64,000 nt of DNA from Octopus sinensis (Eukaryota), in assembly GCF_006345805.1 (NCBI RefSeq), contig NC_043021.1, forward strand, positions 7,812,001 through 7,876,000, in the 5' to 3' direction. Positions 17,673 through 58,640 of this stretch are shown piece after piece (the stretch's first letter is position 1; every line of letters starts with the position of its first letter). The translations under genes and the position numbers were made by a program. The notes beneath the pieces are model-generated. The model was given only the letters and a program-made list of their open reading frames with translations. It was not told the DNA's origin and did no database searches.

Positions 17673-17747
17673 TTTCAGATCAAACTTCATAGCTTCATTT
17701 GCTGATTTTATTGCTTCTGTTCTCTGATCAGTCAGGGAATATTTAAC
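17673..17747 (-). CDS. ZCWPW1: Coding exon, PWWP C-terminal helix (VKYSLTDQRTEAIKSANEAMKFDLK)
   Basis: 75 nt; acceptor tttttcctccacttcacccacag, donor gtaagt; phase 0/0; A-x3-A-x-E-A helix pattern at the spacing I recall for human ZCWPW1 (..VALMMAQEA..). Confidence 0.8.
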
Positions 17748-18554
17748 CTGTGGGTGAAGTGGAGGAAAAATGTTTACTTAAATCCAGAAATGAAATGAAA
17801 GAAGAAAAAAAAAAAAGTTTAAGAGTACAAATGGTGTGGGTGGGTTGGTGGGTGGGGGCAGGAGTTATTAGCAGAGAGAAAATGTTGACAGGAAGCATGT
17901 CATCAGAAACATAAGATAATAATAAAAAAAAAAAAAATAAAAAAAACATAGATAACAAGAGTCTTTATAGCTTATCTATTTAATATGCTATTTTAATGAT
18001 TACACACACACACACACATACACACACTCATCCTCATTAGCATCACCGCCGCCACCACCGCCACCACCACCACCACCACCATCATTTTATGTCTATTTTC
18101 CATGCTGGTATGAGTAAGGTAGTTCAACAGGATTCAACACACACACACACACACACACACAGATTTTTCTGTGGCACCACCGCTATAGAAGTTGCCTTGC
18201 TGTCAGCATTCCTGTTTATGAGACAAAAAAAAAAAAAAAAAAAGACAGCTCCCAAGATTAGTGGAAGAAATTTATTGTGAAAGTTTAGAAGCAGAAATAG
18301 AAGTGAGGAGAATGGGTAGAGCAACGTGGGAAATTAGCGTGAAGGAAAGAAAGGAGACAAAGTGTTAATGGTGATTGAGTGTATTGAGTAGCTGAACCCA
18401 GTGATGGTGTAGGCCATCCCCACCCTAGGGGCAGTGGAAAGATTGAGGGTGGTGTTGAAGGAAAGTGGGCGGTAATGGGGTGGCCAAAAGGGGCAATGGA
18501 TGTAAAAGCAACAAAATAATGGGTTAATTAGGTGAAGTCCTTTTAGTGAAATAC

Positions 18555-18960
18555 ATCATCATCATCATCATCATCATCCTCGTTTAGCGTCCGCTTTCCA
18601 TGCTGGCATGGGTTGGACGGTTCAACTGGGGTCTGGGAAGCCAGAAGGCTGTACCAGGCCCAGTTTGATCTGGCAATGTTTCTACGGCTGGATGCCCTTC
18701 CTAACGCCAACCACTCCATGAGTGTAGTGGGTGCCTTTTACGTGCCACCGGCACAGGTGCCAGACGAGTCTGGCAAACGGCCACGATCGGATGGTGCTTT
18801 TTATGTGCCACTGGTACGGGGGCCAGGTGAGGCTGGCAATGGCCACGAACGGATGGTGCTTTTTACGTGCCACCGGCATGAGGCCAGTCGTGGCGGCGCT
18901 GACAACGGCCACGTTCAGATGGTTCTCTTACGTGCCGCCGGCACTGGTAACTCAGCTGAG
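18555..18960 (-). mobile_element. RTE 3' UTR copy with about 4 internal subrepeats of about 58 bp
   Basis: (cat)n tail; repeated gtgctttttacgtgccaccggcac..ggccacg unit. Confidence 0.85.
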
Positions 18961-19163
18961 TTGTTTTGAATTTACAACAGGAAGTGGTCTATGTTTGTGG
19001 TGGTGAATGGTGGGGGTGCTAGGAATGTGGTCTGGGTGCCAAGGGAGTGGCAGCCCCCAAAAGCTTGGGAACCATTACCCTAGCCCCTCATCATCATGTC
19101 TCTCCCCTACGCATCACTTTACCCACTGAATGAAATGAGTAAAAGATAAAAGATAAAACAAAC

Positions 19164-19443
19164 TATCTATCTATCCGCTCAGTCGAAGTCGACTCTCGGT
19201 CACTCGTTGGATCAGTGTCCTCCAGTCAGTTCTATCCTGGGCCGCTTCTTCCAGATTGGCTATGCCCATTCCAGTATCCCTGTTGATGGTGTCAAGCCAG
19301 CGGGTTCTTGGTCGGCCTCTTCCTCTCTTGCCACTGACCATTCCGAGCATGATGTCCTTATCCAGGGATTTTCTCCGCATAATATGACCGAAATATGCCA
19401 ATCTATGCTTGGTGATCCTAGCTTCTAGCGACATTTTCGGCTT
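19164..19443 (-). mobile_element. Young 5'-truncated BovB-like RTE insertion with 12-bp TSD
   Basis: Uninterrupted frame SLEARITKHRLAYFGHIMRRKSLDKDIMLGMVSGKRGRGRPRTRWLD..RLRLSG*, short (gata)n tail, TSD gataaaacaaac at 19152-19163 and 19444-19455. Confidence 0.9.
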
Positions 19444-19493
19444 GATAAAACAAACATATTAGAACAAAACAGCCATTATATTCTTATACTCAC

Positions 19494-19604
19494 ATTTTCA
19501 TGAGATGCTGGTGGACTGTCACTTGTCTCAAAAGGCTTTACACAGGCTAAGGGAACCCAAGCTCGGGAAACTTTTTTACCAAAGAACACTACATGATAAG
19601 AGGC
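19494..19604 (-). CDS. ZCWPW1: Coding exon, PWWP beta strands (ASYHVVFFGKKVSRAWVPLACVKPFETSDSPPASHEN)
   Basis: 111 nt; acceptor ttttcttctattcag, donor gtgagt; phase 0/0; YHVxFFG..SRAWV motif; visible inside ORF 19476..19685. Confidence 0.92.
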
Positions 19605-19924
19605 CTGAATAGAAGAAAACCAGTGAAAATTTATGATGACAAGGGCAAGCCAATGATGGAAAATTACAATGATTACAATAATCATAATGATGTCAAAATT
19701 ATGTTTACGAATGTTTGTTATGTGTCACGATAAGTTAAGTTTCACAAATTGCATTGGGGAAAGAATTTTTAAGAAACTCTCAGTAAACACATAAGTCAAA
19801 AGACTATGCTAAAATAGAACAACAACATATTTTACTGTTTTTCTGTATAGACTTTTATTTAGAAGGATGTTCATTGAATGACCATGTCAAATCATCATCA
19901 TTGAGCGGATGTTAAACGATGATG

Positions 19925-20265
19925 ATGATGATTTGACATGGTCATTCGAGCGAGGTCGTTGCCAGGGCCGCCGGACTGGCTCCTGTGCAGGTGGCACATA
20001 AAAAGCACCATTTAAGCATGGCTGTTTCCAGTACAGCCTGACTGGCCCTCGTGCCGGTGTCACGTAAAAAGCACCCACTACATTCTTGGAGTGGTTGGTG
20101 TTAGGAAGGGCATCCAGCTGTAGAAACTCTGCCAGATCAGACTGGAGTCTGGTGCAGCCATCTGGTTCGCCAGACCTTAGACAAATCGTCCAACCCATGC
20201 TAGCATGGAAAGCAGACGTTAAACGATGATGATGATGATGATGATGATGATGATGATGATGATTC
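19925..20265 (+). mobile_element. RTE 3' UTR copy with long (gat)n tail
   Basis: Homology to other UTR copies. Confidence 0.85.
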
Positions 20266-20379
20266 AATGAACATCCCTCTAAATAAAAGTCTATACAGGA
20301 AAACAGTAAAATATGTTGTTATAATTTCTGTGTTGGTCAAGTGTTTAAGTTCGCTTCCCAACAATGTGGTAGAAGGAAG

Positions 20380-56617: not shown

Positions 56618-56641
56618 AGAAGGAGAGAATATGTTTATGAT

Positions 56642-57038
56642 GTACTCTTTTACTTGTTTCAGTCATTTGACTGTGGCCATGCTGGAGCACCACCTTTAAT
56701 CGAGCAACTCGACCCCGGGACTTATTCTTTTGTAAGCCCAGTACTTATTCTATTGGTCTCTTTTGCCAAACCGCTAAGTAACGGGGACGTAAACACACCA
56801 GCATCGGTTGTCAAGCAATGCTAGGGGACAAACACAGACACACAAACATATACACACATACATATATATATATACGACAGGCTTCTTTCAGTTTTCGTCT
56901 ACCAAATCCACTCACAAGGCTTTGGTCGGCCCGAGGCTATAGTAGAAGACACTTACCCAAGGTGCCACGCAGTGGGACTGAACCTGGAACTATGTGGTTG
57001 GTAGACAAGCTACTTACCACACAGCCACTCCTGTGCCT
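56642..57038 (-). mobile_element. SINE family A, full length
   Basis: Homology to other A copies. Confidence 0.9.
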
Positions 57039-57727
57039 ATGTAGTGCATTTTGCTGCAAGCAAGTAACTTTCATTTTAAAAAAAAGAAAAGATATTATCT
57101 GATGTGTCCTTTATGCTCTTAATACAGAAGTACAAAAGGATTTGAAGGGTATTTAGCTGCTATTCCTAGCTCAAGTTGGCTCATATTGTTGGTTAGTTAT
57201 CAAATCAACTGTGATCAAGAGTGCTCTAGCCATGAACAGCTCTCATCTTATCATCTAAGACTACCTTTTACAATGTGCTCACGACTTTTTTTAATGATGA
57301 TTAGAAGTGACTTCCACAAGATTTGGTTGTTATTTCTGACAGGTCAAGCAACGATGAAGAGGTGGCCTCATTGGCACGAGTGTTTAAACAGTTTAACAGT
57401 ATCAACATTGTATTCTAATAATCAATAGAAAAACACTAGCAGACCACAAGGAGGATGCTAAAAGTAGAGTGAAAATTAGCAGTGTGCATTCACTCGAATG
57501 GCAACTAAGGAGGTTCTGTTCTCAGCTTCAGTTTCATTTTTGTTTCAAAGTCAGTCACAAATCAGTCCAAGAACAGATGCCGACTTGTCCCTTTTGTATG
57601 TTGATGACCTGGTTCTCAAAGCAGAAATTGTTAAGATCATTTGATCTTACAAAGTTCAATATAAAGGATATATAGCAGGATGAGAAATATAATTTTTTGT
57701 TGTTGTTTTTTTTTTAATATCTCTTTT

Positions 57728-58155
57728 TCTCCTTTACTTGTTTCAGTCATTTGACTGCGGACATGCTGGAGCACCGCCTTTAGTTGAGCAAATCGACCCC
57801 AGGACTTATTCTTTTGTAAGCCTAGTACTTATTCTATCGGTCTCCTTTGCCAAACCGCTAAGTTACGGGGATGTAAACACAAAGCGATATAAAAGTTACT
57901 GTCTCCTTGCTTTGACTTCTTGCAAAAGAATGTTACCAACATGCAAGCAGTGTCCTTCATTTCCAATCTTCTGCGAAAACATGTCTGGTCATGGAGAAAT
58001 ATTACCTTGCTTGGAAACAGATGAGGGTTGGTGACAGGAAGGACATCCAGCAATAAAAAATCCACCTCAATAAATTCTGTCTGACCCATGCAAGCATGGA
58101 AAAGTGAACATTAAACGACGATGATGATGATGCTGACAGTGATGATGATGATGAT
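57728..58155. mobile_element. Partial SINE A (57728-57882, -) joined to an F-type tail (57890-58155, +)
   Basis: Homology to A and F segments. Confidence 0.75.
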
Positions 58156-58188
58156 ATGATGACAATGATGATGATAGAAAAAAATTAC

Positions 58189-58296
58189 CTGGGTTCATAT
58201 CACAAATCCAGTTATGTGGAATCAACAATGGATCATGTACATCTTGTAACCATCTCCACTTATGGCAGTGCAACTGAGTACACTCCACCCAGGTGC
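58189..58296 (-). CDS. ZCWPW1: Coding exon, CW-type zinc finger ([G]TWVECTQLHCHKWRWLQDVHDPLLIPHNWICDMNP[D])
   Basis: 108 nt; acceptor ttattatag, donor G|gtaatt; classic CW pattern W-V-x-C..C-x-K-W-R..W-x-C-x-x-N; partly visible in ORF 58067..58288. Confidence 0.92.
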
Positions 58297-58407
58297 CTAT
58301 AATAATTAGGAGAAATAATTAAAATTAAAATATTAATTAAATTCATGAAAGACACTGCAGGAATGAATAACATGTGAGTCTTTAAACAAGAGGGAGAGAA
58401 AGCAGAG

Positions 58408-58528
58408 GGAGGGGAGAGGAGAGAGAGAGAGAGAGAGAGAGAGAGAGAGAGAGAGAGAGAGAGAGAGAGAGAGAGAGAGAGAGAGAGAGAGAGAGAGAGA
58501 GAGAGAGAGAGAGAGAGAGAGAGAGAGA
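58408..58528. repeat. Pure (GA)n microsatellite, about 60 units, in the 272-bp intron between two exons
   Basis: Directly visible. Confidence 0.97.
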
Positions 58529-58568
58529 GGGGTAAACCAAAGGAATTAATATATAAATCAACAATTAC

Positions 58569-58640
58569 CAGATTCATATATATTTCTTGCCTGCATGCAC
58601 TTTTTCTTGCAAGGTACTTTAGATTTATGAGGAATGGATC
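58569..58640 (-). CDS. ZCWPW1: Probable coding exon of ZCWPW1-like gene, just upstream of the zf-CW exon (..SIPHKSKVPCKKKCMQARNIYES[G])
   Basis: 72 nt; acceptor cttctcctttag, donor G|gtaatt; open in the frame that starts and ends in phase 1 and joins the next exon as ggc (G) before TWVEC. No domain motif of its own, so weaker than the other exons. Confidence 0.65.

Follow-up and report, generated by a model that had tools for sequence, protein, structure and literature searches.

A probable ZCWPW1-like gene in octopus: six internal exons encoding a CW finger followed by a PWWP domain

We analysed a stretch of 64,000 nucleotides of Octopus sinensis (contig NC_043021.1, positions 7,812,001 to 7,876,000; called the window hereafter, with positions counted from its first letter) and concluded that it very probably holds six internal exons, following one another, of a functional cephalopod gene that belongs to the ZCWPW family and resembles ZCWPW1 most. 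They lie on the minus strand between 17673 and 58640; once joined, they make up 557 nt and a single stop-free frame of 185 codons. Each has an AG with a pyrimidine tract upstream and a donor of the GT(A/G)AG type downstream, and the phases at the junctions are compatible. An earlier note, made from the letters of the window, had described six minus-strand exons of this total length with GT-AG borders and matching phases, of which the list of open reading frames (ORFs) showed fragments of two only. Our reconstruction gave exactly the same exons, and the two fragments are the ORFs 58067-58288 and 19476-19685. The note had read the translation as a CW finger directly followed by a PWWP domain, the architecture which defines ZCWPW1 and ZCWPW2, and Pfam agrees, both domains scoring above the curated cut-offs: zf-CW (PF07496) covers residues 25-70 (E 4.1e-11, 43.2 bits for a cut-off of 27.5) and PWWP (PF00855) residues 86-180 (E 4.1e-16, 59.7 bits for a cut-off of 25.6), residues being numbered throughout by their position within the fragment of 185 amino acids. 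The PWWP domain starts about 15 residues past the CW domain, and the two are joined within a single exon. The two motifs quoted in the note, GYPWWPAMVEIDP and YHVVFFGKKVSRAW, are both found in the translation. In addition, independent homologues recover the exons at identical borders (tblastn, E down to 1.7e-18). Since the Pfam cut-offs are passed and the homologues match the same borders, the six-exon model is not a chance pattern.

We name the exons A to F in the direction of transcription and compare them with those of the octopod Argonauta hians (locus L001), where the six counterparts measure 75, 108, 118, 76, 111 and 75 nt against 72, 108, 115, 76, 111 and 75 nt here, all with AG and GT borders and in the same phases. 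Exon A (58569-58640, 72 nt, minus strand like all the others) is entered in phase 1 and encodes a basic linker, ...SIPHKSKVPCKKKCMQARNIYES(G), directly ahead of the CW domain. Exon B (58189-58296, 108 nt) encodes the first half of the zf-CW domain, GTWVECTQLHCHKWRWLQDVHDPLLIPHNWICDMNP, with Cys29, Cys34 and Cys55 and with Trp26, Trp37 and Trp53; the CW signature (TWVECTQLHCHKWRW...NWICDMNP) is read at about 58290, and the tblastn match to the Argonauta protein has 83% identity and the E value of 1.7e-18 given above. The donor of exon B lies in phase 1 after MNP, as it does in a frog ZCWPW1-like gene. Exon C (49626-49740, 115 nt; tblastn E 7e-17) is the one that joins the domains: it encodes the last part of zf-CW (DATQNDCSIPEIDY, with Cys66), then a brief linker of acidic residues, and the opening part of PWWP (GSLVWARVEGYPW). 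The PWWP motif itself is split, GYPW being read at 49626 and WPAMVEIDPD at 33320, and this phase-2 intron between PW and WP is common to Argonauta, the frog ZCWPW1-like gene and mammalian ZCWPW2. Exon D (33245-33320, 76 nt) continues the PWWP domain with WPAMVEIDPDYTSYFEFEEEDSMYP; its length and phases are identical in Argonauta and in the frog gene. Exon E (19494-19604, 111 nt) encodes the PWWP core, ASYHVVFFGKKVSRAWVPLACVKPFETSDSPPASHEN, with YHVVFFGKKVSRAW at about 19590 and the cage residue Phe130, and its acceptor has the same position in the frog. Finally, exon F (17673-17747, 75 nt) encodes a helical extension of the PWWP domain, VKYSLTDQRTEAIKSANEAMKFDLK, and ends in phase 0, the coding sequence continuing past it.

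An alternative acceptor for exon A at 58656, to which a tblastn alignment running into the intron pointed, was rejected, as it would break the phase-1 junction and the Gly-Ser start of the Argonauta exon. Upstream of the retained acceptor, at 58641-58659, the frame remains open for seven more codons (KCASPLG), which tblastn aligned to KNGSPVA of Argonauta and to KKCSSS of the cuttlefish (Sepia-type) protein introduced below. This match may have arisen by chance from the pyrimidine tract, or it may be what is left after the acceptor moved in one species relative to another. Exons A and B are separated by an intron of 272 bp, which carries at 58389-58529 a microsatellite, (AG)n/(CT)n, with 71 copies, ending about 90 nt upstream of the acceptor of exon B; variation in its length might affect splicing.

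We then turn to the relatives of the protein. An exhaustive profile search gave 1150 of them. The first is a "hypothetical protein" of 991 amino acids from Argonauta hians (P0017, GAB1608049.1) with 76% identity; the second is a protein of 816 amino acids whose 90% cluster includes CAE1283525.1 of Acanthosepion (Sepia) pharaonis, an entry named ZCWPW1 by UniRef. The gene had been presented as hidden, and this part of the earlier account is overstated: orthologues are already deposited for Argonauta hians, Acanthosepion pharaonis and many molluscs. Invertebrate ZCWPW1-like genes have the same architecture, and identity to the window protein falls from 76% for the octopod to 56% for the cuttlefish type and 44-54% for other molluscs and echinoderms (among them Mizuhopecten OWF41070.1, Mactra, Potamilus, Biomphalaria, Elysia and Patiria). 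The gene of the window has far longer introns than that of Argonauta and a few residue differences, and otherwise nothing distinctive.

The comparison with Argonauta gives a proportion of differing non-synonymous sites (pN) of 0.137 and of differing synonymous sites (pS) of 0.77, that is a pN/pS of about 0.18; we give this ratio instead of the ratio of substitution rates (dN/dS) because synonymous sites are saturated, pS also reaching 0.67 in the comparison with the Sepia type. A low pN beside a saturated pS shows a coding sequence held under strong purifying selection. As for expression, a Logan contig of 3417 nt (L010, SRR8281665) carries a decapodiform orthologue as an uninterrupted ORF of 816 amino acids, and the Sepia-type protein is encoded on Logan contigs of 2.8-3.4 kb (SRR8281665, SRR8281672), which are spliced mRNAs.

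Exons A and F are both open at their outer ends, which shows that we are dealing with an internal gene segment. In Argonauta, a single large exon (amino acids 1-760) of low complexity, in which Ser, Lys, Asp and Asn abound, comes before the six, and at least two further 3' exons (TRLKLYSFSTRFSGFWSSCDCK...) come after them, the one next to exon F reading TRLKLYSF.... Several observations weigh against a functional gene at this point. The large 5' exon was not found in 58641-64000 by tblastn and blastn of the whole Argonauta locus, which gave only low-complexity matches and matches to short interspersed nuclear elements (SINEs). For the 3' exon, whose sequence is TRLKLYSFSTRFSGFW in Argonauta and TRLKMFSFSSRYKGSW in Sepia-type transcripts, a tblastn search with relaxed settings did not find a counterpart in 1-17672, and scanning the minus strand below 17673 with three regular expressions gave only repeat-derived strings on the wrong strand. 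Moreover, the transcript support is of the Sepia type only. One could then regard the exons as a pseudogene, a decaying or truncated remnant in which the domains are still recognisable, an explanation to which the missing Argonauta-type 5' and 3' exons and a transcript support confined to the Sepia type would lend themselves. We consider it very unlikely: the six exons are open, their splice sites are intact and their phases conserved, and pN/pS against Argonauta, with its saturated synonymous sites, is about 0.18. Since introns of this gene reach as much as 14 times the length of their Argonauta counterparts, it is plausible that the sixth exceeds 17.6 kb. What remains of the gene, a large 5' exon of about 760 amino acids and at least two 3' exons, would by analogy with Argonauta lie outside the window. 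The "apparently intact orthologue" of the earlier note thus stands for the CW-PWWP core, which is intact; intactness can be claimed for this core alone and not for the whole gene, the 5' and 3' exons not being found in the window.

A second question is whether the two domains could belong to another family possessing a CW or a PWWP domain. NSD proteins also bear SET and PHD domains, and the first PWWP domain (PWWP1) of NSD2 reads di- and trimethylated lysine 36 of histone H3 (H3K36me2/3) with a methyl-lysine cage made of Tyr233, Trp236 and Phe266. By sequence and by fold, the PWWP half of the window protein is nearest to PWWP1 of NSD2 and NSD3 and to MSH6, the best match among solved structures being PWWP1 of NSD2 (sequence E 7e-14, Foldseek E 3.7e-8); these NSD and MSH6 domains are also what Foldseek returns. 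The CW domains of MORC3 and MORC4 match too. An origin of the domains in NSD, MSH6 or MORC would account for these matches, and it has to be conceded that our PWWP is as near those of NSD2 and MSH6 as membership of that PWWP subgroup would lead one to expect. Nevertheless, we judge such an origin extremely improbable. The Protein Data Bank searches gave no PWWP structure of a ZCWPW protein, the ZCWPW1 and ZCWPW2 entries being of the CW domain only, so that NSD and MSH6 are simply the nearest available. The NSD2, NSD3 and MSH6 chains match only the PWWP part and the MORC3 and MORC4 chains only the CW part, while human ZCWPW1 aligns over both domains with 121 bits. Unlike NSD2, the six exons and the Argonauta orthologue contain nothing similar to SET or PHD in Pfam. 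The full-length proteins of Argonauta (991 amino acids) and of the Sepia type (816 amino acids) have only zf-CW and PWWP matches, and no SET, MutS or GHKL-ATPase domain was found in either. Because these full-length cephalopod orthologues are devoid of SET, MutS and ATPase domains, NSD, MSH6 and MORC are excluded, and we return to the ZCWPW family.

Within this family, orthology of the ZCWPW1 type is the probable reading, the remainder going to an ancestral-type gene or to an affinity with ZCWPW2. Human ZCWPW1 (isoform 13) aligns with 121 bits and 37% identity over 164 amino acids, an alignment which spans both domains and the helical tail. Among the best 150 of the 1150 relatives there are many vertebrate ZCWPW1 and no vertebrate ZCWPW2, and each of the 150 is at most 53% identical to the CW domain of human ZCWPW2; the molluscan and echinoderm relatives which have been named bear the name ZCWPW1. 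As in vertebrate ZCWPW1, the CW domain is directly followed by PWWP and then by a helical extension, with the four cysteines and three tryptophans of CW, the GYPWWP, YHV.FFG and SRAW motifs and the PWWP cage. The intron positions, whose comparison the earlier note had proposed, go the same way: a ZCWPW1-like gene of the frog Ascaphus (L009) has five introns at the same positions and in the same phases as the window, including the phase-1 intron after MN(T/P) within the CW domain, and its 76-nt exon has the same length. In the mouse, the CW domain of Zcwpw1 is likewise split, between exons 8 and 9 (PMC7314539). Vertebrate ZCWPW2 resembles our gene in the succession of CW and PWWP, in the phase-2 intron of the PWWP motif and in that the last CW cysteine is followed by an aromatic residue. 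It differs in having, in mammals, the whole CW domain in one exon, so that only the phase-2 intron is common, as well as a degenerate PWWP motif (QNWP... in mammals, where ZCWPW1 and the window have GYPWWP) and a two-residue insertion before the third Trp.

The opposite reading, in which the gene is orthologous to ZCWPW2, or co-orthologous to both vertebrate paralogues, is in our view unlikely but deserves to be weighed. The CW domain scores almost equally with both: its best structural matches are ZCWPW1 (2e61, E 1.1e-10) and ZCWPW2 (4o62, E 4.6e-9), followed by MORC3 and MORC4. The aromatic residue after the last cysteine is a Tyr, intermediate between ZCWPW1, which has Trp, and ZCWPW2, which has Phe; the phase-2 intron between PW and WP occurs in ZCWPW2 too, and an oyster gene is labelled Zcwpw2 (PMC12111275). 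We built a neighbour-joining tree, in which the window protein groups with Argonauta and then with the Sepia cluster, within a mollusc and echinoderm group, vertebrate ZCWPW1 forming a separate clade. This tree contains no ZCWPW2 sequence and shows only this grouping. Full-length ZCWPW2 was not obtained, either from a profile search seeded with the CW domain of human ZCWPW2 or from the supplement of PMC8892340; a search with this domain alone gave only single-exon fragments of 88-96 amino acids, so that it is over a single exon, taken from genomic contigs (Logan; L002-L008), that ZCWPW2 was compared. This narrow comparison counts against an assignment to ZCWPW1. What speaks against ZCWPW2 is, besides the composition of the best 150 relatives, the ZCWPW1-like character of the GYPWWP and SRAW motifs and the intron inside CW, which ZCWPW1 of frog and mouse has and mammalian ZCWPW2 lacks. 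Furthermore, both paralogues are reported in cnidarians in a 2026 preprint, and since cnidarians carry both, the duplication would predate molluscs. The comparisons favour ZCWPW1 over ZCWPW2 without proving it, full-length ZCWPW2 not being among the sequences compared; of everything that was compared, the protein resembles ZCWPW1 most, and the bit score, the names of the relatives and the exon structure of the frog speak for the affinity to ZCWPW1 which the earlier note had read from the motifs. Cephalopod orthologues also depart from vertebrate ZCWPW1 by a much longer N-terminal region of low complexity, of about 600-760 amino acids.

Vertebrate ZCWPW1, in human and mouse, reads H3K36me3 together with trimethylated lysine 4 of the same histone (H3K4me3) and is required for the repair of meiotic breaks. 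We looked at the residues by which the window protein could do the same. Those of the CW fold are all present: the zinc-binding Cys29, Cys34, Cys55 and Cys66, and Trp26, Trp37 and Trp53. The aromatic cage of the PWWP domain is intact as well, Tyr96, Trp99 and Phe130 aligning with Tyr233, Trp236 and Phe266 of NSD2 and with human ZCWPW1. In an AlphaFold model, the mean predicted local distance difference test (pLDDT) score is 82, the CW and PWWP blocks lying mostly at 84-97, and a helix is predicted at residues 165-180. The binding pocket of CW is less well preserved. In human ZCWPW1, H3K4me3 is bound by Trp256, Glu301, Thr302 and Trp303, Glu301 being needed for binding (PMC7314539). Trp256 is kept as Trp26; Trp303 is replaced by Tyr73, which is still aromatic; Thr302 is replaced by Asp72, at a position which is variable in mouse too; and the counterpart of Glu301 is Ile71. 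The replacements of Glu301 and Trp303 speak against the binding of H3K4me3, as does the variation, in both length and sequence, of the stretch after the last CW cysteine: three cephalopods have PEIDY, PEADTY and PEALPSNKDNEEF there, in a CW domain that is otherwise highly conserved. The codons of PEIDY are at 49700-49712 in the window, their Argonauta counterpart is at about 17395 of L001, and that of the Sepia type is on L010. The histone-binding residues of CW thus appear to be only partly conserved. Binding of H3K4me3 by the CW finger seems likely but not assured, because the aromatic pair is kept while Glu301 has become Ile71 in a variable stretch.

From the conservation of binding residues, we infer that the best-supported mechanism is that of a protein reading two marks, methylated H3K4 and methylated H3K36. 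With Trp26 and Tyr73, the CW finger would grip between them the methylated Lys4 of histone H3, methylated Lys36 would be held in the PWWP cage formed by Tyr96, Trp99 and Phe130, and the protein would dock on nucleosomes bearing both marks. To give it a role in meiosis, downstream of a writer similar to PRDM9, is speculation by analogy with the mouse.

The earlier note had gone further and raised the question of a PRDM9-type recombination pathway in cephalopods. Nothing within the 64-kb window bears on this pathway. In vertebrates, ZCWPW1 and ZCWPW2 tend to vanish together with PRDM9 (PMC8892340), and because of this tendency a constrained ZCWPW1-like gene in cephalopods is weakly suggestive, by analogy, that the pathway may persist there. 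That cephalopods would keep a working PRDM9-type system, in which a writer lays H3K4me3 and H3K36me3 at hotspots and the ZCWPW1-like protein reads them, we regard as a doubtful, tentative proposal. If it were true, PRDM9-directed recombination would be at work in a protostome lineage, and, through the altered CW pocket (Glu301 to Ile, Trp303 to Tyr), the reader might be tuned otherwise than in mammals. In our literature search, no paper turned up that deals with PRDM9 or ZCWPW1 of cephalopods. Among other molluscs, the snail Lottia was reported in 2009 to have a Prdm9 gene with concertedly evolving zinc fingers and an expressed sequence tag from male gonad (PMC2779102), genes annotated as PRDM9 are testis-biased in surfclam and oyster (PMC9716669, PMC12111275), and Prdm9 and Zcwpw2 both show high expression in the male gonad of the oyster (PMC12111275). 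Zcwpw1 and Zcwpw2 have been found in nearly all of 28 cnidarians, beside full-length Prdm9, by a preprint which calls for the examination of other clades (bioRxiv 10.64898/2026.09.07.749791). The ZCWPW family is widespread and already annotated across molluscs, where PRDM9-like genes have been known since 2009, and the PRDM9 idea is less new in this phylum than the earlier note implied. Taken alone, the gene of the window adds little: it is an ordinary additional member of a widespread family.

From the first to the last of the six exons, the distance is 41 kb in the window and 11 kb in Argonauta hians (L001 13117-24134). The intron between exons D and E measures 13.6 kb against 0.95 kb, which makes it 14 times longer, and the extra intronic DNA consists mostly of short interspersed repeats. 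For annotators, this means that tiny exons in very long, repeat-filled introns can easily be missed or truncated by gene finders.

The window is AT-rich (37-41% G+C) and repeat-laden, and it is without long ORFs, as is usual in an animal genome. Ten transposon-like ORFs had no Pfam match and Rfam found nothing in the window, a search in which short exons of other genes could be missed. The short ORFs 19171-19434, 8878-9189 and 48408-48551 (minus strand) and 51955-52167 and 6157-6453 (plus strand) give the impression of transposon remnants, although without a Pfam match; examples are what looks like the tail of a long interspersed nuclear element ("...GRGRPRTRWLD..."), only 60 nt downstream of exon E, and a seemingly mariner-type string ("PYSPDIAPLDFHLF").

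A repeat of about 90-115 bp occurs in both orientations at more than 25 sites (for instance 17318-17409, 56878-56971, 59180-59273 and 62339-62451). It is 80-90% identical to copies in Argonauta (L001 4521-4635 and 6905-6992), looks like a SINE family common to octopods, and generates many of the spurious ORFs, "...LLTTQPLL..." being one of them. There are also three tandem arrays made of long units, with 90-95% identity: 40540-41266 (184 bp, 3.9 copies), 60823-61365 (179 bp, 3.0 copies) and 13635-14078 (245 bp, 1.8 copies); the consensus units of two of them appear by eye to share sequence. At about 44860-45920, a local tandem duplication of about 518 bp gives rise to identical ORFs at 45059-45199 and 45577-45717, and at 45063-45218 and 45581-45736. 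Finally, degenerate GAT/GGT repeats (about 500 bp), with super-units of 45, 51 and 102 bp, lie at 35269-35786 and 34313-34422 and produce long artefactual ORFs in several frames; comparable DNA of low complexity is present downstream of the Argonauta gene, at 29828-30154 and 34759-35069 of L001.

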